Sequence record: MN988522.1
Strand: one strand, 5' to 3'
DNA: 64,000 nt
Shown here: positions 5,188 through 63,762 of the stretch, one piece after another
How the letters are laid out: the number at the start of each line of letters is the position of its first letter
How positions within the stretch are numbered: the stretch's first letter is position 1
The notes under the pieces: model-generated
What the model saw: only the letters and a program-made list of their open reading frames with translations
The model's database searches: none
What the model was told of the DNA's origin: nothing
Position numbers and translations under genes: made by a program

Positions 5188-5496
5188 ATGAGCAAATATC
5201 GTACAGTACATACTCTCAAAACGCTTGCACCATTCTACTATGCTGTAATGGGTGGTGAGAAGACATTTGAGATTCGTAAGAATGACCGACAATTTCAGAA
5301 GGGTGATCTTCTAGTCCTTGATCTTTACGAACCAGATGCTCAAACAAAGAATAGTGTGATTAGACCAGTATCTATTTACTGTGAAGTAACTTGGGTACTC
5401 GCTGGAGGTCAATTTGGTATTGAGCCAGGATATGCAGGACTAGCTATTCGTAATCTTGTTTTGCAGGAATTCAACGAATTAAGAGGTCCTTTCTGA
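5188..5496 (+). CDS. ASCH/PUA-like (DUF3850-type) protein
   Basis: GEKTFEIRKNDRQFQKGDLLVL signature. Confidence 0.75.
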   Translation: MSKYRTVHTLKTLAPFYYAVMGGEKTFEIRKNDRQFQKGDLLVLDLYEPDAQTKNSVIRPVSIYCEVTWVLAGGQFGIEPGYAGLAIRNLVLQEFNELRGPF

Positions 5497-5503
5497 TATT
5501 ATT

Positions 5504-5532
5504 CAGCGAATCTGACGTCTAAAAGCCTTCCT
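5504..5532 (+). promoter_or_regulatory. Bipartite motif CAGCGAA-N12-AAGCCTTCCT, candidate phage-specific promoter (copy 1)
   Basis: Intergenic, 32 nt upstream of the HD/polymerase operon; identical boxes and spacing at 17112-17140 (-) and 63734-63762 (+). Confidence 0.65.
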
Positions 5533-5564
5533 TTCTACGACCCCTTAGATGAGATCGATACTTT

Positions 5565-6236
5565 ATGAAAGACATTGTCTTTAATCCTCTCCTTAAGATC
5601 TCTAGTGTGAACCGGTATTCCGGAGTTTATCTGACCAAGAATGAGTCAGTTTCAGATCACACTACTCAAACTGGATTACTATGTATTCTAGTTGGCAACG
5701 AGATCAATAAACGTCTTGCGAAATTGAAATCCTCTGTTAGAGTGAATCTCGAGAAATTAGCCTACAAGGCTTTAATCCACGATCTCGAGGAATCCAAGAC
5801 TTGTGACACTCCTAGAAATGTTAAATACTTCAATGACTTGATTTATCAAGAATTTGAGAGAATGGGTGATCAGGTTGTTCTTGAACTATCTGAACTCTAT
5901 GAATTTCCTGAGCTCTATGAGCAATGGAAAAATGCTAAGGATAAGACTCTAGAAGGGTATATTCTTAAAATCTGCGATATGATTCATGTCGTACGTAAAC
6001 TAGTTGATGAAGTTGTACTTCTTGGAAATCTTAACATGCTTCAGGTAGCACTGGAGTTGAAGGATCATCTGAAGAAGACTCACGATTATATTAATAAGAT
6101 TACAGATCTACCTGCTGAAGCGATTGACGTCTTTAATGAATTGACGATTTTCTCATTGGATACCGTTAACTATATTCTTAAGAAACATCAATCGGAGATT
6201 ACAGATTATAACTTTACATCTCTGAAGAGCGCATAA
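5565..6236 (+). CDS. HD-domain 5'-deoxynucleotidase (YfbR-like)
   Basis: NRY...ESVSDH...HDLEES..CDTPRNVKYFN...KICD matches the YfbR pattern; its stop overlaps the polymerase start (TAATG). Confidence 0.8.
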   Translation: MKDIVFNPLLKISSVNRYSGVYLTKNESVSDHTTQTGLLCILVGNEINKRLAKLKSSVRVNLEKLAYKALIHDLEESKTCDTPRNVKYFNDLIYQEFERMGDQVVLELSELYEFPELYEQWKNAKDKTLEGYILKICDMIHVVRKLVDEVVLLGNLNMLQVALELKDHLKKTHDYINKITDLPAEAIDVFNELTIFSLDTVNYILKKHQSEITDYNFTSLKSA

Positions 6237-9200
6237 TGTCCTTAGAAATTGAATCCATTATTAACAAAGTTGATCTGACTAGTGATGTTCGTGTATGTCA
6301 CATGTGCCCACTAGCTGAGAAGTTTGGTGGATGTGATAATCTTGGACGAGTATCTTTTGAGATTGTAGGTCAGAATCCTAAGGTTCTACTTGTAGGTGAA
6401 GCACCTGCAGCTGAGGATCTGAAATCTGAACGACCATTCAGTAGTCAGTCTGGTTCATTCTTGAGAATGGCGATGGCTGAAATTGGCATTAATGATTACG
6501 CTCTAGCGAATGTGATCATGTGTCAACCTAAGAGTGTAAATATCTACACTCCGACTCCTGAAGAGTCCGCTCACTGTAAAGCACATATTCAAAGATTTGT
6601 TGAAAAGTACAAACCTGAGACAGTCATCTTGCTCGGACGAGGAGCATATGAAGTCATTCTACCAGAGAGTTACTTCGCAGGTCAGTCAGTTACGAATGTA
6701 ACCAAGAAGAAGGCTATCGAAATTGATGGTGTACGTTATGGAGCAGCATTTCATCCATCGTATATCTTCCGTAATGGTGGTAAAGAATCACCACAGTACA
6801 TCGACTTCTTGAATCGATTGAGACGACTGACTCAGAATAGTGTTGATGCAGAATTCATCGTACCGTTTAAGATCGTTAATCTCGATCAACTAGATGAGAC
6901 TCTCGAAGAGTTTGATGTCTACAAAGAACTAGGCTTCGACTATGAAGGTACCTCGCTTGATCCGTATGACGTCAATTATCAGGTTCTCGGACTTGGTATG
7001 TCATCGATGGACAAGGCAGTTTATATCGACTTTCATCGAGAGCCTACTCAAGAAGAAAAGAATAAGATATCTGACTTCATTCGTAAGAAGCAGATGTGGG
7101 TTTATAACGTCAACTATGAAACCAAAGTTACATGGTCTAAGTTGAGTAATGATCTTATTCGATTCCACGATGCGATGACTCTTGTAAAGATCGACTGTTC
7201 TCCTGGATCACTGAAGGACAATGCTCGTAAATATCTGAATGCAGAAATCTGGGAAGAGATCGTAGGTAACTTGACTACCTTGTTCTACGATATCTTCCAA
7301 TTTATGAAGAAGATTGAGGAGAAATCTCCTAAACTATATAATGCTTGTAGACAAGCTAATATGGAGGCGATCTATCTTCTTAAGGAAGATACTGCTGAGA
7401 AAATCACTGGTGGTAAGAAGAATCCTAAGGTTACGAGATATCGTACCAAGCAGGCAGATCATGCAGACTACATATCTGCTAAGATCTCTGCACTTAGAGA
7501 ATTCTGCTCTGATGAAGATATCCAACGTGGATTTACTAAGTTTCCTTACGAGTGGGCAGCTGTTCCTCCGAAGATTCTAGGTGAATACTGCTGCTACGAC
7601 TCTTATTACACACTAGGTCTTAAGAATCATCTGTGGGATAAGTATAAGAGCGTTTACCAGTATTATATCACCCAAGGGTGGCTAGGCTCTACGATGGAGA
7701 GCTATGGTCTGAATTGGGATGATGATAAAGCTTCTGAGCATGAACGATTCTATCTCGTTGAAGCTACGACATGCTTGAATCAGATCATTCAGAAATTGGA
7801 TTTTGGTGAGAAAACTCTTGATATTCATACAAGAGCAAGCATGATTTTCAATGACTCTAGTCTTCCTGATGCTAGGAAACTCATTGATCTGAAAGGTATC
7901 TTTAATCCAGGTACTCCAGATAAACTTAAACAGAAACCCTTCTGGGATAAGTACGTAACTGACTTTACGACTGCAATATCCATCTATCTTGTTCTCAGTG
8001 AACAGATTCTAATGTCTCCAATCATTCCTGACCAAGCGATTGAGTTAGTCGATCGTCAAGATCTCAATAAAGCTATTGAGAATTTGATGTCAGTAGATTG
8101 GACTAAGTACGATGGAGTTGATCTTAAGACTGCCAAGTCAATTCAGAAATTGATGATGGATCTTATTGGTACACTCGATGAGAAGATCGGATGGAAGCTA
8201 TATGCATTCAGAAGTGATGTTCTAGAGTGGCAATATAAAGCTCACGAAACGTACGGTGGACTAGATATCGACAATCGTGAGACTTGGACTCCTGAGTTCG
8301 AGTTGTTATATCTTCTGAGAAGATATAAAAAGGTTGAGAAGAGTAAGAATACGTACATCAATGGTAAGGTAGGTAGAGCACGAGTATGGTTGTCGACAGT
8401 CGATGATTACCAGAAGCCTCCTGTTCGACTGAAGCGTTACTTTGATGTTATGGAAGAGAGACAGTGGAAGAAGTATGAACTTCAGCATAACGAGAGATGG
8501 ATTCTTGATACAGAATTCAATGTTGCTGGTGCAAATACTAAACGATGGAAAGCAGCTATTCATACTGTTCCATGGGGATCAGAACTCCGAGAGATCTATG
8601 CATCTCGTTGGTGGGATGGTCTGTTTATGCATTACGACTACTCTCAGGCAGAAGTTCGAATTCTAGCAGCTATCTCTCAGGATAGAGCACTACTGGAAGC
8701 ATTCGCTGATCCTGATACTGACATTCACATGTTCGTTGCATCTCGAATCTGGAAGAAAGATCCTAAGGATGTGACTCCAGCTGAGCGTCGATATGCTAAG
8801 GTCTGCTCGTTCTCGATTTTGTACGGTAAGTCTATCGAAGGATTTGCTACTGAACATACCAAGGGTGATGTTGCAGCAGCTAAGCGTATCTTTGATGACT
8901 TCTATGCAGCATTCCCTCAAGTTAAGGAGTGGATTGAGAAACAGCATAGAGATGCGAAAGTATCTGGTAAGGTCTTTACCTTATTCGGAGATCCTCTGTA
9001 TCTTGATATGTCGGACCCTAATGGTGCTATGCGTGATGCTCAAAACTGGCCAATTCAGTCCTCGAGCAGCTGTGTAGCAGGATGGGCTATCTGGATGAAC
9101 TACGAGTTTTCTAGAAATAGAAACATTCCGATTCTTCCAATGGTCTTTACTCACGACTCTCACGATATGGAATTCAGATGTCAACATCTATTCGAGACGA

Positions 9201-9565
9201 TTGATACTGTTCTCGAAACTGCAGTTGATCTACCTAAGCGTAGATTTAATCTTCCGATGAAGATCGACTGGGAAATCGGTGTTAATCAGTCTGATGCAAT
9301 TGAGTTCAAAGAAACATCTCGATTTGATGAAGGTCGAGGTCGTACGTATCACTTTGAATGCAATGAAAATGCAATGATGCCTGTATTCGATCGTCTAAAG
9401 AACTACTTTGACATCGAATATGAAGTCACTTCTAGAGAGACTGAGAGAGCATCGCTGAAAGAAATGTTCGTTGCAAGACGAGCATTCTCTAAGTATCTTG
9501 GTACAGATGTAACCGTCGTAGGTGGTAACCTCAAACTAGTGAAGAAAAATGGGATAAAAATATGA
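6236..9565 (+). CDS. polA: Family A DNA polymerase with N-terminal family-4 uracil-DNA glycosylase domain and 3'-5' exonuclease
   Basis: UDG: CHMC, VGEAP, RPF, ANVIMC, FHPSY. Exo: FDYE, YCCYD. Pol motif A DYSQAEVRILA, motif B RRYAKVCSFSILYG, motif C THDS. Confidence 0.92.
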   Translation: MSLEIESIINKVDLTSDVRVCHMCPLAEKFGGCDNLGRVSFEIVGQNPKVLLVGEAPAAEDLKSERPFSSQSGSFLRMAMAEIGINDYALANVIMCQPKSVNIYTPTPEESAHCKAHIQRFVEKYKPETVILLGRGAYEVILPESYFAGQSVTNVTKKKAIEIDGVRYGAAFHPSYIFRNGGKESPQYIDFLNRLRRLTQNSVDAEFIVPFKIVNLDQLDETLEEFDVYKELGFDYEGTSLDPYDVNYQVLGLGMSSMDKAVYIDFHREPTQEEKNKISDFIRKKQMWVYNVNYETKVTWSKLSNDLIRFHDAMTLVKIDCSPGSLKDNARKYLNAEIWEEIVGNLTTLFYDIFQFMKKIEEKSPKLYNACRQANMEAIYLLKEDTAEKITGGKKNPKVTRYRTKQADHADYISAKISALREFCSDEDIQRGFTKFPYEWAAVPPKILGEYCCYDSYYTLGLKNHLWDKYKSVYQYYITQGWLGSTMESYGLNWDDDKASEHERFYLVEATTCLNQIIQKLDFGEKTLDIHTRASMIFNDSSLPDARKLIDLKGIFNPGTPDKLKQKPFWDKYVTDFTTAISIYLVLSEQILMSPIIPDQAIELVDRQDLNKAIENLMSVDWTKYDGVDLKTAKSIQKLMMDLIGTLDEKIGWKLYAFRSDVLEWQYKAHETYGGLDIDNRETWTPEFELLYLLRRYKKVEKSKNTYINGKVGRARVWLSTVDDYQKPPVRLKRYFDVMEERQWKKYELQHNERWILDTEFNVAGANTKRWKAAIHTVPWGSELREIYASRWWDGLFMHYDYSQAEVRILAAISQDRALLEAFADPDTDIHMFVASRIWKKDPKDVTPAERRYAKVCSFSILYGKSIEGFATEHTKGDVAAAKRIFDDFYAAFPQVKEWIEKQHRDAKVSGKVFTLFGDPLYLDMSDPNGAMRDAQNWPIQSSSSCVAGWAIWMNYEFSRNRNIPILPMVFTHDSHDMEFRCQHLFETIDTVLETAVDLPKRRFNLPMKIDWEIGVNQSDAIEFKETSRFDEGRGRTYHFECNENAMMPVFDRLKNYFDIEYEVTSRETERASLKEMFVARRAFSKYLGTDVTVVGGNLKLVKKNGIKI

Positions 9566-10293
9566 GTCGAGCAAAATCACTGATCGACATGATTAAAGGA
9601 ACCAAGAACGAGTCTGGTGACGATGACGACGAAATCTCAAATCGTCGTCGTGGTGGTACTTGGATTGATCCTCATCATGTTGACGCAGCATCCAAGAATC
9701 TGAAGCGTACTCAGTCATTCTACAAGAAGGCTAGTAATGCTAGCTCAGTTGAAGATCAAGAGTATTGGTTAGCTCGAGTCTTTAACAAGAATGCTGTTGC
9801 TAAGAGAATCTCCTCTGGATTCTATAACAAGGAAGCTAAGGCAGGAGTCGTAGGCGTCGATGACGTTGAAGATCTGTCAGCATCTCTTGTTACAGGTAAT
9901 CCAAGAGCATCGGGTCGTGTTACGACTAAGGATCACACACGTAATCCTGAAGAGATCTTTGCTGCTAACCAGATCGTTAAAGCTCTCTACGATACGATTG
10001 ACAAGAAGTGGCCTGGACGTCCTCAGAACAAGATGGTTCTGACATACTTCCTCAAGGTCAATAAAGCTGATCATCTTATTAACTTTAAGCTTCCATACGA
10101 TGATCGTGTGGAAGAAATCATCTCTTCTATTGAGAAATATGCTAAAGACAATAACTCCAAGATTACTTGGACTACTCCTAAGCAGTTTCAGAATTTTTCA
10201 GGTATTGAAGACAGAATGTATGCAAAGGTCATGCAGTTCCTAGCAGATAATGCTGTAGAATTGGGTGCTCTTATCATTCGAGGTAAGAAATAA
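9562..10293 (+). CDS. Putative sigma-factor-like protein A, with candidate capsid-targeting N-terminus
   Basis: Paralog of 10736-11392 (shared EYW..VF..N and VL[TS]YF blocks); NPEEIFAANQIVKALYDTID...VLTYF resembles the sigma region 3-4 linker; starts MSRAKSLIDMI. Confidence 0.45.
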   Translation: MSRAKSLIDMIKGTKNESGDDDDEISNRRRGGTWIDPHHVDAASKNLKRTQSFYKKASNASSVEDQEYWLARVFNKNAVAKRISSGFYNKEAKAGVVGVDDVEDLSASLVTGNPRASGRVTTKDHTRNPEEIFAANQIVKALYDTIDKKWPGRPQNKMVLTYFLKVNKADHLINFKLPYDDRVEEIISSIEKYAKDNNSKITWTTPKQFQNFSGIEDRMYAKVMQFLADNAVELGALIIRGKK

Positions 10294-10640
10294 TGGACCA
10301 GAGAGTACTTGACGTTCTAGCTCAAGGATATATTAATCGTGAGCTTACACTACCAGCCGCTGATCTATCTAAGGCTGTTATTTATATTGTTAATTATCAT
10401 GTTAGACATAAGACAAGTGGACTGGCAGATCTAAAGACTGCTTATGGTAGTCCTGAGTCTTCTAATCTGGCAGTTAGGTTCTACTCTACAGGTCTATTTA
10501 ATGGTGTTGTAGATAATGATTCTAAGAGCTCAGATCTATTCTGGTCTCTATTCAATTCGATGACTACATCTCTGATGATTGAGTCCATCAATGAATCGTT
10601 AGCTGAATCCTCGAAAGAAGTTGAAGTGATCGCCGAATAA
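10293..10640 (+). CDS. Hypothetical protein with E-rich C-terminus
   Basis: Start overlaps the upstream stop (TAATG); ends MIESINESLAESSKEVEVIAE. Confidence 0.6.
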   Translation: MDQRVLDVLAQGYINRELTLPAADLSKAVIYIVNYHVRHKTSGLADLKTAYGSPESSNLAVRFYSTGLFNGVVDNDSKSSDLFWSLFNSMTTSLMIESINESLAESSKEVEVIAE

Positions 10641-10679
10641 AGGCGCTTACTTGTTGGGTAAATGGGTGCAGTTAGGCTC

Positions 10680-10711
10680 TTGGAGGGATTCTTATTCGGT
10701 GAGCCCTCCAA
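10680..10711 (+). promoter_or_regulatory. Intergenic hairpin upstream of sigma-like B
   Basis: TTGGAGGG / CCCTCCAA 8-bp inverted repeat, no U-tract. Confidence 0.4.
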
Positions 10712-10735
10712 GGCTTCCAGAAAGAGGGTAATGTA

Positions 10736-11392
10736 ATGGCTAGCGATAGACAGATGAAAGGTTACATCTGGGGAGAGCAAATCCTGGATCATGCTCACAT
10801 TGAGCATTATGCAAGGGCGATGAGATCCGATGATGTACGTACCGAGGAGTACTGGTACCAGGCAGTATTTCATGGGAAGAACCACTCTAAGGTTCTTCAG
10901 TCGGAAGTCTTTCATAAGAAAATCCGCAACAACGTTACAAATAAAGTAGAAGTTGAGACTCTGGTTTCTACTTCTAACTCTGACGTCGTTAATGATGTTC
11001 TAGCAGAGGAGAGAAAGAATGAAGTAAAATATTCTCGAGTTATCGAGGATGATAAGGTCGGTAATATGTCCGACTATCTTCCCGATGCAACTGTTGGGTT
11101 CTCAGTTATTATCAGAGAAATAGCTGACAAATGCAACGATGATGAAATCAAGGTCCTGAGCTACTTTGTATGTCAGGAACATCTGGATAATATCCTATTC
11201 GAGGGGAATTCGATTCATTCATCAAACGATCGCTTCAATCGTACGATCCTAGGTATCTGGGAAAAGAATGTGAAGAGCATCAATGATCTGAATCGATTTG
11301 TAGGTACTCGTGCTCGTGCTGATAAAGCTAGGTGGAGACTCTGCAATCTCTTGAAGAAGGAGTATCCTGAACTCTTGTCAGGAAAACGATGA
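10736..11392 (+). CDS. Putative sigma-factor-like protein B
   Basis: Paralog of 9562-10293; C-terminal KSINDLNRFVG..ADKARWRLCNLLKK resembles a region-4 HTH; located next to beta-prime. Confidence 0.5.
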   Translation: MASDRQMKGYIWGEQILDHAHIEHYARAMRSDDVRTEEYWYQAVFHGKNHSKVLQSEVFHKKIRNNVTNKVEVETLVSTSNSDVVNDVLAEERKNEVKYSRVIEDDKVGNMSDYLPDATVGFSVIIREIADKCNDDEIKVLSYFVCQEHLDNILFEGNSIHSSNDRFNRTILGIWEKNVKSINDLNRFVGTRARADKARWRLCNLLKKEYPELLSGKR

Positions 11393-11628
11393 GTCCATCT
11401 AACAAGCCCTATGACCCAAAGTTAGACACAATCATCTACGAAAATAGACATCCTGAAACGGGTTTGTGCATCTCGGTGCATAAATACGGAAGCAGTGAAC
11501 CGAAGATCAAGTTAGGTCCAAGAATCGTCGGTGACGACTCCAAACCTGTCTACTTGAAATTAGGTAGAATATCTATAAACGAGTTTTTGTGGATATCCGA
11601 GGTCCTAAAACCCTACGTTAAATCTTAG
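11389..11628 (+). CDS. PC4-like small ssDNA-binding/transcription cofactor
   Basis: YDPKLD...ISVHKYGSSEPKIKL...KLGRIS pattern typical of small PC4-fold proteins. Confidence 0.5.
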   Translation: MSPSNKPYDPKLDTIIYENRHPETGLCISVHKYGSSEPKIKLGPRIVGDDSKPVYLKLGRISINEFLWISEVLKPYVKS

Positions 11629-11640
11629 AGGATCTAAAAC

Positions 11641-14600
11641 ATGCAACTTTCTCTGAAGCCAGTCTCTCCAGAATCTGTACTCTTGACTTCACAAGGAGAG
11701 GTCAAGTCGTATGAGACTCTGAACTTCAAGACAGGTCTACCTGTTCGAGACGGTCTCTTGTGCCAGAAGGTATTCGGACCGATTAGAGACTACGTATGTG
11801 AATGCGGCAAGTACGATGGTAAGAAATACCAGGGACATACTTGTGAGAAGTGCGGTGTTACGGTAGCGAGTTCACGTGCTCGTACTGTGAGAATGGGTCA
11901 TATTGATCTTCAAGTTCCCATTCTTAATCCGTTGATGATCGAGTCGATCGAATCGATTATAGGTCTCCCATCCAGAAAGATGGAGGACTTTATGAAGAAC
12001 AAGATCTGCCTGAAATTTTCAGCATCTGGTACAGGTAATCTTGTTCGTAAGGACGGTACACGAGGTATCGCGTATTTTGTAGATCCTAAGGAATCTGATC
12101 CTCGATCTCCTACTCTGCAGCATACGAAGTCGTCTCTGGTTCTTTATGAACTCTTGACGGATCTCGATATTGAAGAGACGCTCAAAGTCAATGGATCCAA
12201 GATCCTGAAGACCTATGTGCAGAAGAACTTCCCTCTTTCTAATCTCTTCATTCGTTATCTACCGGTATCTCCAGCAGGATACCGTCCAGTCACTCGTATG
12301 AGAAACTACTATTCTCAGCATCCCAAGAATGACCTTTATCAGAAGATCATTCGACGTACTCTGCGAGTGAAGGAACTGGTTAATATCAATGCAGACTCAA
12401 TGATTCTTCAGGAAGAGGCAGGCATTCTGTATAAGTCTGTCGATCAACTCTTCACTGGAGGAGCTCGAGATGGCGATGGGAACCCTCTTCCTGGAACCAT
12501 TGAGAAGATGATGGGTAAGAGAGGTATTCTCCGAGGAAATCTTCTCGGTAAGCGTACCGACTACTCTGGACGTTCAGTTATCACTTCAGCAGGTGATCGT
12601 GTAGAAGTGGACCAGATTGGTCTACCTCGTAAGATGGCATACATCTTGTTTCGTCCTTTCATTCTCCGTTATCTGATGACGGAGTATCTGGATCATTATA
12701 CTGAAGCACTGAAGCACTACGAGAAGAAGACTGTTATCGCACTGAAGTCTCTCGAGATGGTAGCTAAGGATTATCCGATCATCATGAATCGTGCTCCTAC
12801 GCTTCATAGATACGGTGTAATGTCTTTCCGTACCAAGTTGGTAAATGGTAAGGCTATCCTCGTTCATCCGATTGTATGTTCTCCATTCAATGCAGACTTC
12901 GACGGAGATACTGTAGCTATCCACTTGCCTCTTTCAGCTAAGTCTGTTCAGGAGTGCAAAGATTATCTCATGCCTCAGAACAATCTCCTGTCTTCACTTG
13001 ATGGTGATCCGATCATCAATATGTCGCACGAGATGGTTATCGGTCTTGCTATCATGTCTCGTATTAAGGATCATGATAAGGGATTCGGTACATTCCGACG
13101 TATGGATGAGCTCGAGTATCTTCATACTGTCACCAATCCTCAGACTAGCCGTCCTACACTTGAGATCTACGATAGAATCAAGTGGAAAGATGAACGAGGA
13201 GTGACAGAGACGTGCTATGGTCGACTTCTTCTCGAGCAGACATTCAAGACCAAGAATCTTCCGAAGGACTTCTCTAAGAAGACTATTCGTCGGATGATCA
13301 GTGATGCGTACGACAAGCTTGGACCTGATGAACTGATTAAGGTACTGGATGTAGCTACTCAGCTTTCATTCAAGTATGCTACGAACTCTGGTTTCTCAGT
13401 TTCGATTGATGATTGTAAGGTACCTTCTACGAAACCTGCTAAGATTGCGAAAGCTAGAGAGCAGGAAGCTGAGAATTATCGTCAATTCGATAACAATGAA
13501 ATCAATCTTGCAGAGCGTCGAGAGAACAATATTCGTCTCTGGAACGATGTCTTTGAAGATCTTCATCACGATTGGATGAAAGAAGCAGGTGAGGACAATC
13601 CGGTAGTTCTTATGTATACTACTGGTGCTCGTGTTAGTAAGTCTCAGGTCAATCAGATCGGAGTCGCTAAGGGTCTTGTATCCAATGCACTCAATCAGAT
13701 CATCGAGAAGCCTATGGTTAACTCCTTCCGTGAAGGATTGTCGACGTTTGAGTACTTTGCATCTTGCTCTGGATCTCGTAAGTCCATGGCAGACAAGAAG
13801 AATCTGACTCCCAAGTCTGGTTATCTTACACGTCGAATGATTACTGCTAGCCGAGATTTCTTCATTAATTCAGATGATTGTGGTACCGATAAGGGTATCA
13901 TGCGTACGATGAAGTCCTCGTATGGACGTTATCGTTGCGACAATGGTGAGATGATTGGTACGAACAATAGTGAAGAACTCGTTAAGGTTCGTAGTCCGAT
14001 TCATTGTGAGTCGCATGGTGGTATCTGCGTTAAGTGCTACGGTATTGATCCTGCTAAGCGTAAGATCGTCACGAAGGGGTCCAACGTAGGAGCTATTGCA
14101 GCTCACTCGTTGACTGAATCTACAACTCAGATGACGATGCGTACCTTCCATACATCTGGTGCAGTCGTTCTGAAGGATAGTCCGATGGTCATTACTGCCC
14201 AGAAGGATGGTAAGATCAGCTGGGATACTCTTCATCCTGTCTACAGCAAGATTCATGTTGTTGCAGATATGGAAGATTGGGATACACCTCTCAATGATCG
14301 ATTGACGTATACAGTTCATAACAAGATGTCTCGCATTCTTGTTAAGGATGGTCAGTCTGTCAAGAAGGGTGATCCTCTAGCGATCTACGTTGATGAAGAT
14401 CTTGAGAGCGACGACGTCAGTGGATCGCTCCCTAAGATTGAATCTCTGTATGAAGGTCGAGTACCTCCGAAAGCGTACAAGTCAGTTATCTCGAAGGTAG
14501 CTGGTAAGATTGGTATTAACATCGGAGATGAAGGTCTTAAGATCTTCGTTGATGGTGAATACCAAGGTACTGCTCATCCTAAGACTCCGGTATTCGTTGC

Positions 14601-15024
14601 TCAAGGTCAGTATGTTGAAGCTGGTCAGACTCTCTCGTTTGGTTCTCCAGACGTAGTAGGTTTGTTCAAGGAGACAAAGGATCTTGATCTCGCTTACAAG
14701 GTCTTTGAGAAGACTCTGATGGATATCTACAATAAGGAAGGTCTCCAGCCAGTACCAACTCATTCGGAGATGATCTTCAGAGCGATGTCTAATCTGGTAT
14801 ACACCGAGAGTGGTCCTTATGGTCTTCGATCCCATGGAGACAAGGGTAGCATTATGCTGAAGGGTATTACTCAGATTGGTGCGAATCATCCGTCCTGGTT
14901 GAAGTCAATCGGATTCGGATGGGTAGCTCAGACGATCAGAACTTCTGCTGTGAATCTTGCTACCACGTACGATCTTCCTACCGAACGTCTGATGTCTGGT
15001 GAATTGATTTACGAGGATAAATAA
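11641..15024 (+). CDS. rpoC: DNA-directed RNA polymerase beta-prime subunit, unsplit, bacterial type
   Basis: Zn ribbon DGLLCQKVFGP..CECGKY..CEKCGV..RMGHI; GNLLGKRTDYSGRSVI; NRAPTLHR; catalytic NADFDGD at 12889-12909; bridge helix TPKSGYLTRR; trigger loop TQMTMRTFHTSG. Confidence 0.97.
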   Translation: MQLSLKPVSPESVLLTSQGEVKSYETLNFKTGLPVRDGLLCQKVFGPIRDYVCECGKYDGKKYQGHTCEKCGVTVASSRARTVRMGHIDLQVPILNPLMIESIESIIGLPSRKMEDFMKNKICLKFSASGTGNLVRKDGTRGIAYFVDPKESDPRSPTLQHTKSSLVLYELLTDLDIEETLKVNGSKILKTYVQKNFPLSNLFIRYLPVSPAGYRPVTRMRNYYSQHPKNDLYQKIIRRTLRVKELVNINADSMILQEEAGILYKSVDQLFTGGARDGDGNPLPGTIEKMMGKRGILRGNLLGKRTDYSGRSVITSAGDRVEVDQIGLPRKMAYILFRPFILRYLMTEYLDHYTEALKHYEKKTVIALKSLEMVAKDYPIIMNRAPTLHRYGVMSFRTKLVNGKAILVHPIVCSPFNADFDGDTVAIHLPLSAKSVQECKDYLMPQNNLLSSLDGDPIINMSHEMVIGLAIMSRIKDHDKGFGTFRRMDELEYLHTVTNPQTSRPTLEIYDRIKWKDERGVTETCYGRLLLEQTFKTKNLPKDFSKKTIRRMISDAYDKLGPDELIKVLDVATQLSFKYATNSGFSVSIDDCKVPSTKPAKIAKAREQEAENYRQFDNNEINLAERRENNIRLWNDVFEDLHHDWMKEAGEDNPVVLMYTTGARVSKSQVNQIGVAKGLVSNALNQIIEKPMVNSFREGLSTFEYFASCSGSRKSMADKKNLTPKSGYLTRRMITASRDFFINSDDCGTDKGIMRTMKSSYGRYRCDNGEMIGTNNSEELVKVRSPIHCESHGGICVKCYGIDPAKRKIVTKGSNVGAIAAHSLTESTTQMTMRTFHTSGAVVLKDSPMVITAQKDGKISWDTLHPVYSKIHVVADMEDWDTPLNDRLTYTVHNKMSRILVKDGQSVKKGDPLAIYVDEDLESDDVSGSLPKIESLYEGRVPPKAYKSVISKVAGKIGINIGDEGLKIFVDGEYQGTAHPKTPVFVAQGQYVEAGQTLSFGSPDVVGLFKETKDLDLAYKVFEKTLMDIYNKEGLQPVPTHSEMIFRAMSNLVYTESGPYGLRSHGDKGSIMLKGITQIGANHPSWLKSIGFGWVAQTIRTSAVNLATTYDLPTERLMSGELIYEDK

Positions 15025-15027
15025 AGG

Positions 15028-15225
15028 ATGCAAGACCTATCTCAACTATGTGAAGTTGAGATGGAGAAGTTAGTTGAAATACTAATGAGATCGACTCACT
15101 TGACACTCGACGGTGTTGAGCTGAGTCGATCTCATGAATATCATAATAGCCCATCTGTCTCTACAATTAAAACTCATAAAGTCCTTGATGACTCATACAT
15201 TACAGTTAGACTGAAATATGTATAA
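15028..15225 (+). CDS. Hypothetical protein
   Basis: Starts 3 nt after the rpoC stop and overlaps the next gene; no motif recognised. Confidence 0.5.
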   Translation: MQDLSQLCEVEMEKLVEILMRSTHLTLDGVELSRSHEYHNSPSVSTIKTHKVLDDSYITVRLKYV

Positions 15226-15931
15226 CTTGCAATACGATGATGGAATTCTTAAATCAAATAGGGAGTCTCTCGTAAACATACGAGCTCCATTCTTCAAACG
15301 GATTGATCGACGATCTCGCAAGTCGTCCATCGAGAGATTAATGATCTCACCTGATACAACAAGAAATTGTAGTCAGATTAAGAGATTTCTCGTTCCGTTC
15401 AACGATAAGTACTTGTACAGCATGCATGTGACTTATCGTGACGACTTAAAGTGTCAATCTATTTATGACACTAACAAGTCTCTCAAGCGAATCCTCCGAT
15501 CTAAAATGTTAATGTCAGCTGTGAACAGGATAAATGAGTATCCTCAACTCAAAGCAGACATATTGTCTGTAATCAAGCTTGTAGTTAATTCTTGGGAGTT
15601 TGATGGTCTTATCACAGACATTGAATGGCTCCAGGATGAAAATCTACTGGATACTGTGATATCTAAGTGGAAACTGAAGAAGTACGAATCCTCTACAGAG
15701 CGAGGGTCAGTGATCAATCTCTTAATAAAGAGTTTTGATGGAGTTCCACTTAATCTTCTATCTCATCTAGAGATGAAGAAAATCAGTATTGAGGATACTG
15801 ACATTGAGGACGTTAAGTTTAAATGTCCTCTGATATTAATGCGATCGAATTCATCTTGTGCAGGATTCATATCTAAGTCCTTGGATAAAGGACTACCTGT
15901 GAGTCTGTTCAAGATTGATATAAAAGAGTAA
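15218..15931 (+). CDS. Hypothetical protein
   Basis: 237-aa ORF filling the space to the terminator. Confidence 0.65.
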   Translation: MYNLQYDDGILKSNRESLVNIRAPFFKRIDRRSRKSSIERLMISPDTTRNCSQIKRFLVPFNDKYLYSMHVTYRDDLKCQSIYDTNKSLKRILRSKMLMSAVNRINEYPQLKADILSVIKLVVNSWEFDGLITDIEWLQDENLLDTVISKWKLKKYESSTERGSVINLLIKSFDGVPLNLLSHLEMKKISIEDTDIEDVKFKCPLILMRSNSSCAGFISKSLDKGLPVSLFKIDIKE

Positions 15932-15988
15932 AAATAAAGGCCACTAGGCGGGACCCTTCTCGGAGGATTCACCTAGTGGCCTATTTTT
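15930..15988. terminator. Bidirectional intrinsic terminator between convergent modules
   Basis: AGGCCACTAGG (15938-15948) / CCTAGTGGCCT (15972-15982) stem, with an A-tract on the left and a T-tract on the right. Confidence 0.85.
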
Positions 15989-15993
15989 GTGTC

Positions 15994-16248
15994 TTATGGA
16001 AGAAGTGGTACGAAACTCTTCAGCTTATTGTACACATCATCCTGCTTACCCATTTCAGTCGAATACTTATCAAGAATCGTCTGATTATCTGGGAATTCAT
16101 TACCTTGATTAGCTACCCAGTCGACATAATCATGCCAATCCTGGTCATCGTGAAGATCACGATGCTGCTTAATCAGATTTGCATATTCAGCATCTGTGAA
16201 TTCATGCAATGATGAAAGCTTCTCAAGAATGTCTTTAGCTCTACTCAT
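15994..16248 (-). CDS. Small acidic protein with candidate capsid-targeting N-terminus
   Basis: GGAG-6nt-ATG at 16248 gives MSRAKDILEKLSSLHE. Confidence 0.7.
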   Translation of the reverse strand: MSRAKDILEKLSSLHEFTDAEYANLIKQHRDLHDDQDWHDYVDWVANQGNEFPDNQTILDKYSTEMGKQDDVYNKLKSFVPLLP

Positions 16249-16259
16249 ATTAATCTCCG

Positions 16260-16715
16260 TCAAGCTACTACAGCGAGTTCATTACTTGGTACTTCATGAA
16301 CGTCACCATCGACTTCGATCATGCAGATTTCACCGTTCACTTTAAGAACAGTGCCTGTACCGTGAACTGATTCAACAGTGTTATTAAGAAGGATCTCACG
16401 ACCATTCTTATCTTCGCATTCGATGAATGCTCTCTGACCATTGTCAGGAGTGTAATCAGGAGCTTTACCTGTTACGCCATCTGCATTCACATTGTTCCAG
16501 TGACCGTATGCGTCAAAGTATAGTACGTCGAGATCCGAACTATCTTGGAACTTGTCACGTTCAGCCATAGCATCCTTGAAAGGCATTGCTAGAGGACCTA
16601 GGATAACTTTATTGTTGGTACGATTAACAATGTACGTACCAATGCGTTTACTGGTATCTTCGTCGATACCTGTGATCTTTGACAGATCACTAATCAGACC
16701 TGATGCTCTGCTCAT
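16260..16715 (-). CDS. Hypothetical protein with candidate capsid-targeting N-terminus
   Basis: AAGGA SD; begins MSRASGLISDL; small beta-barrel-like C-terminus. Confidence 0.7.
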   Translation of the reverse strand: MSRASGLISDLSKITGIDEDTSKRIGTYIVNRTNNKVILGPLAMPFKDAMAERDKFQDSSDLDVLYFDAYGHWNNVNADGVTGKAPDYTPDNGQRAFIECEDKNGREILLNNTVESVHGTGTVLKVNGEICMIEVDGDVHEVPSNELAVVA

Positions 16716-17111: not shown

Positions 17112-17140
17112 AGGAAGGCTTATGTCGCCTTCCTTCGCTG
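17112..17140 (-). promoter_or_regulatory. Bipartite motif copy 2, overlapping a terminator-like hairpin
   Basis: Minus strand reads (ATT)CAGCGAA-GGAAGGCGACAT-AAGCCTTCCT; AGGAAGGC/GCCTTCCT also forms an 8-bp stem just after the SGNH gene. Confidence 0.6.
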
Positions 17141-20309: not shown

Positions 20310-20334
20310 AATGCTATCCTTAATGAGATATAAA

Positions 20335-63733: not shown

Positions 63734-63762
63734 CAGCGAATTGAGCTCTCAAAAGCCTTCCT
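63734..63762 (+). promoter_or_regulatory. Bipartite motif copy 3
   Basis: CAGCGAA-TTGAGCTCTCAA-AAGCCTTCCT, pointing out of the window. Confidence 0.6.

Follow-up and report, generated by a model that had tools for sequence, protein, structure and literature searches.

Phages are known to take over transcription by modifying the host RNA polymerase with small proteins or new sigma factors, by encoding a single-subunit polymerase, or by encoding a complete multisubunit enzyme; the jumbo phages AR9 and phiKZ have β-like as well as β′-like subunits of their own, usually split, and do not depend on the host core. Here we describe a locus of Rhizobium phage RHph_TM40 (Kleczkowskaviridae, Cuauhnahuacvirus; MN988522.1, 207,431 bp, 383 genes) in which a gene for a bacterial-type β′ subunit is accompanied by two genes, A and B, within a module of order A-C-B-β′-D-E (Table 1). 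The stretch that we analysed, called the window, comprises the last 64,000 nucleotides (nt) of this genome, to which it is identical in sequence, and window positions equal record positions minus 143,431. The original prediction, made from the letters of the window alone, had taken A and B for paralogous, sigma-like specificity subunits of a phage RNA polymerase that switch between temporal classes of promoter. We find that A and B are almost certainly true, ancient paralogs, and that they very probably function with the phage β′.

The closest described systems differ from this locus in several respects. With sigma factors of the ECF type (group 4) and with the SPO1 cascade of gp28 followed by gp33/gp34, A and B share a size of ~25 kDa and a predicted layout of two helical domains on a flexible linker, ending in a C-terminal pair of helices that is helix-turn-helix (HTH)-like. 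The occurrence of two paralogs, each encoded behind a different class of bipartite, fixed-spacing motif, likewise suggests a cascade. Unlike these factors, however, A and B show no similarity to sigma domain 2 or domain 4, whether in sequence, profile or fold, and their presumed partner is a phage-encoded β′ rather than an unmodified host core. Like AR9 gp226 and phiKZ gp68, they are phage-encoded, have no recognisable sigma signatures and appear dedicated to a phage set of polymerase subunits, but RHph_TM40 encodes β′ only, and A and B are about half the size that we assume for gp226 and gp68. Neither profile nor Foldseek searches of the PDB matched them to gp226 or gp68, whose structures we take to be in the searched set, or gave any significant match to a solved structure. 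T4 provides a further comparison in gp55 (sigma domain 2-like) and gp33 (a flap-binding co-activator), small proteins that redirect a multisubunit polymerase in phages of the T4 superfamily. T4, in contrast, uses the complete host core and encodes no β′, and gp55 and gp33 are mutually unrelated, whereas A and B are paralogous; a PHROGs scan of A and B gave nothing below an E value of 0.1, and PDB profile searches found no similarity to gp55 or gp33. The Kleczkowskaviridae are themselves T4-related, and their member ΦM9, which current taxonomy places in the same family as RHph_TM40, uses gp55 and an RpoE-like sigma factor and lacks gp33 (PMC4621102).

Aligned directly, A and B share a single block of 55 residues (BLASTP, 27% identity, E 6e-5), which is suggestive but thin alone. 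The paralogy is solid because three independent lines of evidence agree on it, as the original prediction had proposed. A hidden Markov model (HMM) built from Vibrio phage proteins and metagenomic relatives only, searched against 2330 open reading frames (ORFs) from the whole phage and other loci, retrieved B at 2.5e-10 and A at 8e-4, with noise starting from 0.34; in 2330 ORFs, a B-only HMM also retrieved A at 2.9e-5, and the best non-self match of an A-only HMM was B. Profile-profile comparison with hhalign, using disjoint A-like and B-like profiles, aligned the two over 169 columns (A51-234 to B22-209) with 98.7% probability and E 3.1e-16, and the Vibrio-like profile aligned with both the A-like (95%, E 2.9e-8) and the B-like profile (99.5%, E 4e-22). 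Finally, a Foldseek search with the AlphaFold model of B among predicted viral structures gave as its best non-self match a 243-aa Rhizobium phage protein that can only be A (with E 9.4e-5 and a probability of 1.0), followed by a 211-aa protein whose length and accession series fit a Vibrio phage 1.031.O protein. Four blocks had earlier been aligned by inspection between A and B; in the hhalign profile alignment three of them are in register (DQEYWLARVFNKN/TEEYWYQAVFHGKN, MVLTYFL/KVLSYFV and ADHL/LDNI), and the first, IDPHHVD/LDHAHIE, is not. A match of one HMM to the homing endonuclease EVB94_146 was due to chance and was gone with broader profiles.

Next, we compared the genomic contexts of the family. 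In all ten contexts, namely the window, contigs L011, L012, L016, L017 and L018, Vibrio phages 1.031.O and Va2, and E. coli phages IME392 and EP_H11, the B-type member either directly precedes a bacterial-type β′ gene or sits within it. The B-type gene is immediately upstream of β′ in the window, in all the contigs and in 1.031.O; in the metagenomic contigs L016, L017 and L018, β′ starts right after the B- or Vibrio-type gene, and in Va2 two small ORFs separate the B-type gene from the downstream β′. The β′ gene of the two E. coli phages is split into pieces of 504, ~228 and 522 aa (IME392, L015 7908-12869; EP_H11, L008 6908-11570), and a B-like gene (218 aa in IME392, 251 aa in EP_H11; B-like HMM E ~1e-11, small database) lies between the pieces. 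In the same phages, a protein of 486 aa (IME392) or 483 aa (EP_H11) encoded just after the DNA polymerase PolA has an A-like N-terminal part. The C-terminal β′ piece of IME392 carries the annotation ‘beta subunit’.

The order A-C-B-β′-D-E is kept at 55% and 37.5% β′ identity in L011 and L012, respectively. L011 (metagenomic contig ERR2738329_8409) encodes a 5'-deoxynucleotidase, a UDG-fused PolA, an A-like protein (280 aa, 36% identity to its window counterpart), C (136 aa, 37%), a B-like protein (218 aa, 38%), β′, D (65 aa, 32%, E 2e-9) and E (233 aa, 44%). In L012 (contig SRR19193837_39202), a ribonucleotide reductase is followed by a 276-aa A-like protein, a 113-aa gene, a 223-aa B-like protein, β′, and genes of 66 and 250 aa, and orthologs of C occupy the same position in both contigs. 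L017 (SRR10482246_1195837, 383-1549) encodes a 388-aa protein in which an A-like part (residues 12-219) is fused to a C-like part (278-350), a fusion that argues for joint action of A and C. The C-terminus of a 467-aa protein of Vibrio phage Va2 is also C-like. Yersinia phage GN1, which possesses a β of its own, encodes a 200-aa protein upstream of β′ that was considered and is not a convincing family member (8 bits, hhalign 0.3%). Because A and B are tightly and anciently linked to the β′ gene, a role related to RNA polymerase is their best reading.

The β′ subunit itself is 33% identical to Salmonella RpoC over 950 aa. In a landmark alignment, the NADFDGD catalytic loop, bridge helix and four zinc-binding cysteines are all retained and are conserved across the clade, and most of the enterobacterial lineage-specific insertion is missing, as is the C-terminal tail; its clamp-helix segment is ungapped and of about average identity (35%). 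None of the 383 genes of MN988522.1 is annotated as β. A tblastn search of the full 207-kb genome with Salmonella RpoB, a query that detects jumbo-phage and YerA41-type β subunits, gave a best E of 2, compared with 1e-125 for the control query, RpoC from the same contig as RpoB, and no ORF of at least 80 aa in the genome contains the G[NQ]KG motif, which we take to be near-universal in β/Rpb2. A YerA41-type β query matched 41 phage records, none of them from a Rhizobium phage, Va2, 1.031.O, 150E35-1, IME392 or EP_H11; these tests cover RHph_TM40 and the isolated Vibrio and E. coli phages. Six large unannotated ORFs considered as a hidden β (EVB94_178, 275, 276, 260, 224 and 225) gave no signal of a polymerase in Pfam or PHROG. 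MN988522.1 thus has a bacterial-type β′ without detectable β, α or ω, and the same is seen in the related Vibrio phages Va2, 1.031.O and 150E35-1 and in the E. coli phages IME392 and EP_H11 (tblastn, two β queries). Since a catalytically intact β′ without β can work only by joining host subunits, the lone β′ presumably enters the host core, and any enzyme formed would be a host-phage hybrid, in place of the phage RNA polymerase that had been assumed.

Homolog searches with word-indexed methods returned only one to four close relatives apiece, and the family came to light only when 1.84 billion representative proteins were searched exhaustively with HMMER, which gave 47 clusters at 50% identity (E up to 1e-3). 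BLAST groups these clusters as A-like (the relatives P0019, P0022, P0026, P0031 and P0043), B-like and Vibrio-like. The N-terminus of B finds a protein of 211-213 aa in three Vibrio phages, in each case upstream of the β′ gene, and scans of IMG/VR with family alignments, with B first and then with the Vibrio protein first, gave zero confirmed relatives. The family is undescribed, rare and unannotated, and its members are predicted to be all-helical, two-domain proteins. AlphaFold2, run on alignments of 46-47 sequences, gave a mean predicted local distance difference test score (pLDDT) of 82.8 for B and 83.0 for A, with the helical domains mostly above 90, and a predicted template modelling score (pTM) of ~0.55, as expected if two domains sit on a flexible linker.

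In the model of B, a small N-domain (residues ~14-64) is followed by an acidic, poorly predicted linker (65-115) and a six-helix C-domain (116-214), which ends in an 8-residue helix (182-189), a turn and an 18-residue helix (192-209) that together form the HTH-like pair. In A, an N-terminal extension with an acidic run (1-36) precedes the conserved N-domain (37-93), from which a linker leads to the helical C-domain (129-240). Conservation across the family lies nearly all in the N-domain, whose signature in B numbering is Y25, A28, E37-E38-Y39, V44-F45-H46, E57 and R64; these residues and the L141-A-Y143 helix of the C-domain are kept in at least 60% of 51 sequences and are present in both A and B. 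The C-domain is otherwise variable and keeps this ‘VLAY’ helix. In the B subfamily it carries G190-x-R192, and more basic residues stand where the last helix begins. Two elements noticed in the original prediction can be placed on this architecture: the PEE…VL.YF segment is indeed present, and the A subfamily conserves it (TPEEI…MVLTY), and the HTH-like C-terminus of B agrees with the AlphaFold secondary structure and with a conserved G-[TS]-R…R pattern but matches no HTH family. By analogy, a conserved module that would bind a partner, joined to a variable, basic, HTH-like module, resembles a specificity factor.

The genome also contains two classes of bipartite, promoter-like motif. Class I has the consensus TAGGT[TG]CA-N15-GGATTCTT, with a start-to-start distance between its boxes fixed at 23 nt. 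Seventeen clear copies lie on the + strand, compared with ~1 in shuffled sequences (23 regex matches on both strands); 14 of the 17 fall in the first 62 kb, a region of small ORFs, and three lie elsewhere, including the window copy upstream of B. The other 16 sites are mostly at record positions 27-61,834. The window copy sits in the gap between C and B, the one place in the module where neighbouring genes are well separated, and L011 has a degenerate class-I-like element in its C-B gap. By eye, a G[GA][AT]TTCTT-like box is seen upstream of the B-type genes in L011, L012 and Vibrio phage 1.031.O.

Class II occurs 22 times across the genome, always with a spacer of 13 nt, compared with 0-5 in 20 shuffles; for the two classes, chance would give ~1-2 copies. 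Most class II sites stand 11-123 nt ahead of a gene in the region from 61 to 149 kb. The site listed in Table 1 precedes the 5'-deoxynucleotidase gene that heads the run of PolA, A and C, and it is kept at the syntenic position in L011 (L011:556), again upstream of the deoxynucleotidase gene; the window holds further sites at 17113-17139 (-) and 63735-63761 (+), and about 19 more lie in the genome. Within the spacer, bases 4-8 are in many copies the complement of the downstream box, and the two vary in step (AGGC/GCCT, AGGT/ACCT), a pattern suggestive of a hairpin. The CAGCGAA motif singled out in the original prediction is not enriched in the window as a heptamer alone (9 matches, 5.07 expected), but it proves to be the upstream half of this enriched bipartite element. 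Sites of sigma70 consensus type are not enriched and are, if anything, depleted at window positions 5300-16300 (13 found, 25.8 ± 5.7 in shuffles). B and β′ thus stand behind class I and A behind class II, neither of sigma70 type, an arrangement that fits two specificity factors acting at different times and so agrees with the temporal switch proposed earlier. The promoter status of the motifs and the pairing of motif with protein are putative.

Taken together, we tentatively favour the reading that A and B are promoter-specificity subunits of a hybrid host-phage polymerase, paralogs that would serve different promoter classes. The phage would supply β′ without β, α and ω, and this β′ would assemble with host α2, β and ω into a hybrid core. 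The conserved N-domain of A and of B would bind the hybrid enzyme, most simply through the phage β′, and the variable, basic C-domain ending in the HTH-like pair would read DNA, with the two proteins acting like small two-domain sigma factors outside the sigma70 family. B would be made together with β′ from the class I element, whereas the class II element heading the replication operon would give A and its partner C. A role analogous to that of sigma factors is plausible, if hypothetical.

Several results weigh against this reading. No test detected a sigma factor: hmmscan against Pfam (46 members, E up to 5) matched 35 families, and none of the 25 commonest is a sigma family, in PDB profile searches with two family profiles no chain of a sigma factor came up to an E of 10, and Foldseek comparison of the whole models with 350,542 PDB chains gave best E values of 4.1 (B) and 0.79 (A), with no sigma. 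In hhalign, the A-like, B-like, Vibrio-like and pooled profiles matched a profile of five sigma factors (E. coli RpoD, RpoS, RpoH, RpoE and FliA) with a probability of at most 0.6%, the same as an unrelated control, and RpoE as a positive control matched the other four with 74.9% (E 2.6e-5). Neither sigma domain 2 (Sigma70_r2, Sigma70_ECF) nor domain 4 (Sigma70_r4 / r4_2) was detected in family members, and the N-domain helices are short (6-17 residues), unlike those of sigma domain 2. The sigma-like identity originally proposed therefore fails in sequence, profile-profile and fold tests alike, including the comparison of predicted structures that had been suggested as its check; judged by sequence and models, the family should not be filed under sigma70, and it matches nothing else solved. 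Leads towards TFIIB-like proteins (ORC6 at E 0.18; for one member, the cyclin domain of Rrn7 at E 0.11) were not significant and had no echo in Foldseek. In addition, the β′ clamp helices keep positions R275 and E295 (E. coli numbering), presumably important for sigma70 binding, so that a host sigma factor might still serve the hybrid enzyme and no new specificity factor would be needed. Both motif classes could also be RNA-level or other elements, and the order of a cascade is guesswork because class II also drives the operon encoding A.

The strict adjacency to β′ and the strongly conserved N-domain fit binding to β′, and they are compatible with a role of A and B as assembly or exchange factors that help the phage β′ to dock on host α2β against the host β′, or as omega-like stabilisers, with no reading of DNA. 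A lone β′ must solve an assembly problem, the conserved small partners C, D and E suggest a multi-protein assembly, and no DNA-binding family is detectable in A and B (Pfam, 46 members). Long-diverged paralogs with variable, basic, HTH-like C-domains are, however, not expected of a chaperone, and D and the A/B family match no known family in Pfam, PHROG or NCBIfam, with no comparison aimed at omega made; we regard an assembly role as unlikely. Less probable again is that A and B are polymerase-bound regulators other than a primary specificity subunit, such as co-activators, appropriators, anti-sigma-like proteins, or elongation or antitermination factors. The logic would be comparable to that of T4 gp33, AsiA/MotA or lambda-type antiterminators, and the retained clamp-helix residues, which we take to be sigma70 contacts, would let the host sigma stay in use; also, ΦM9 shows that transcription accessory sets vary in the lineage (PMC4621102). 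Against regulators of this kind, no sigma factor or gp55 is annotated in the genome, which leaves two abundant non-sigma70 motifs without another candidate reader, and PDB profile searches and Foldseek show no similarity to any solved RNA-polymerase-binding factor.

A function outside transcription, in replication or in the handling of hypermodified-thymidine DNA, is suggested by the place of the family between the UDG-fused PolA and β′. The A gene is directly 3' of PolA in the window, L011 and IME392, and the phages are among those that have YerA41-type polymerases and for which T-hypermodification is suspected (PMC12686479, PMC13697223). The A-like gene of L012, in contrast, comes after ribonucleotide reductase and not PolA, the universal member B tracks β′ rather than PolA and lies inside the split β′ of the E. 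coli phages, and GN1, a YerA41-type phage with the same polymerase type and its own β, is without a convincing family member upstream of β′. We consider such a function improbable, and less likely than either the assembly factors or the accessory regulators. There is very little room, in our estimate, for A and B as extremely diverged sigma70 members beyond the reach of the tests used. Their size, two-domain layout and linker would suit such an origin, as would the ‘VL.Y’ helix followed by the HTH-like pair, which resembles the pattern of regions 4.1 and 4.2, and T4 gp55 is an example of how very far phage sigma factors can diverge. All four kinds of test were nevertheless negative with the positive control working, the predicted C-domain has two helices more than sigma domain 4, and the N-domain is modelled as a small bundle of short helices.

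The preferred reading of A and B as specificity subunits has a wider form, in which phages of Rhizobium, Vibrio, E. coli and uncultured hosts would swap their β′ into the host core and A/B factors without a sigma fold would run a temporal cascade on TAGGTkCA-N15-GGATTCTT and AGCGAA-N13-AGCCTTCC. The A-type and B-type forms would then stem from an early duplication, in a clade that is widespread but unstudied. We regard this wider form as possible, though doubtful.

The literature that we searched, on phage names, the genus, relatives and a lone phage β′, contained no published account of an A-C-B-β′-D-E module or of a phage β′ on its own. A phage that supplies only β′ and conserved partner proteins would represent an intermediate strategy of takeover, of which we found no description in that literature. 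As phage-encoded, non-canonical factors dedicated to a phage polymerase subunit, A and B would be of a known kind; a hybrid enzyme with a lone β′ would be the more radical departure. If A and B are indeed specificity subunits, they would be initiation factors without a sigma fold for a bacterial-type core, which bears on the evolution of promoter recognition, and the presence of the family in the E. coli phages IME392 and EP_H11 makes the question directly testable in a laboratory host. The PolA of the window is a UDG-family A polymerase fusion of the group described for YerA41-type phages. Published work on this setting deals solely with the UDG-fused polymerase, which is shared with these hypermodified-thymidine phages and whose listed carriers include RHph_TM30, IME392 and EP_H11 (PMC12686479, PMC13697223), and YerA41 itself has both β and β′ (PMC7354516). 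The module travels with this polymerase and may be an adaptation of transcription to a modified template.

Table 1 Features of the module and its surroundings in the window.
Feature	Description	Position	Strand	Remarks
Class II element	promoter-like, AGCGAA-N13-AGCCTTCC	5505-5531	+	34 nt upstream of 5'-deoxynucleotidase gene
PolA	UDG-fused family A DNA polymerase	6236-9565	+	
Protein A	EVB94_323, 243 aa, A-subfamily member	9562-10293	+	ORF and GenBank annotation
Protein C	EVB94_324, 115 aa, conserved small partner gene between A and B	10293-10640	+	
Class I element	promoter-like, TGGGTGCA-N15-GGATTCTT	10663-10693	+	43 nt upstream of B start codon
Protein B	EVB94_325, 218 aa, B-subfamily member	10736-11392	+	
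79-aa ORF	EVB94_326, lineage-specific	11389-11628	+	start overlaps B stop by 4 nt
β′	EVB94_327, 1127 aa, bacterial-type RNA polymerase β′, lone subunit	11641-15024	+	Pfam Rpb1 domains 1-5
Protein D	EVB94_328, 65 aa, conserved small gene directly 3' of β′	15028-15225	+	
Protein E	237 aa, last gene of module	15218-15931	+	GenBank start 15341

GenBank labels A, B, C, D, E and the 79-aa ORF as hypothetical, and scans of all six against Pfam, PHROG and NCBIfam gave zero matches. The ORFs of A, B, the 79-aa protein and β′ lie where the original prediction had them. Gene E probably starts upstream of its GenBank start, as listed in Table 1, because the 237-aa product can then be aligned with the 233-aa L011 ortholog from its first residue onwards; this start overlaps the end of D by 8 nt.

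The 79-aa ORF between B and β′ had been described as PC4-like. It is similar in length to the PC4 / p15 single-stranded-DNA-binding coactivator (PF02229) and has, by eye, a K-x-G-x-I-S…E-F-L pattern followed by a probable helix. However, it does not match the Pfam PC4 model at E up to 1, phmmer against the PDB returned only an unrelated dehydrogenase (E 0.076), and it is absent between the B-like gene and β′ in the syntenic L011 and L012; the PC4 assignment is thus not confirmed for this ORF. A genuine PC4/p15-domain protein is encoded elsewhere in the genome (EVB94_182, 70 aa, record positions 68531-68743, PF02229 E 6.8e-11), and BLASTP gave no alignment between it and the 79-aa ORF at E up to 100.

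Additionally, a T4-late-like ATTTATAT box was considered as a late promoter; in the block of structural genes it is only ~2-fold enriched over the rest of the genome, which is not convincing. Such boxes in the window, at 20328, 27068, 33634 and 63337 (-), lie upstream of or within late structural genes, after hairpins.

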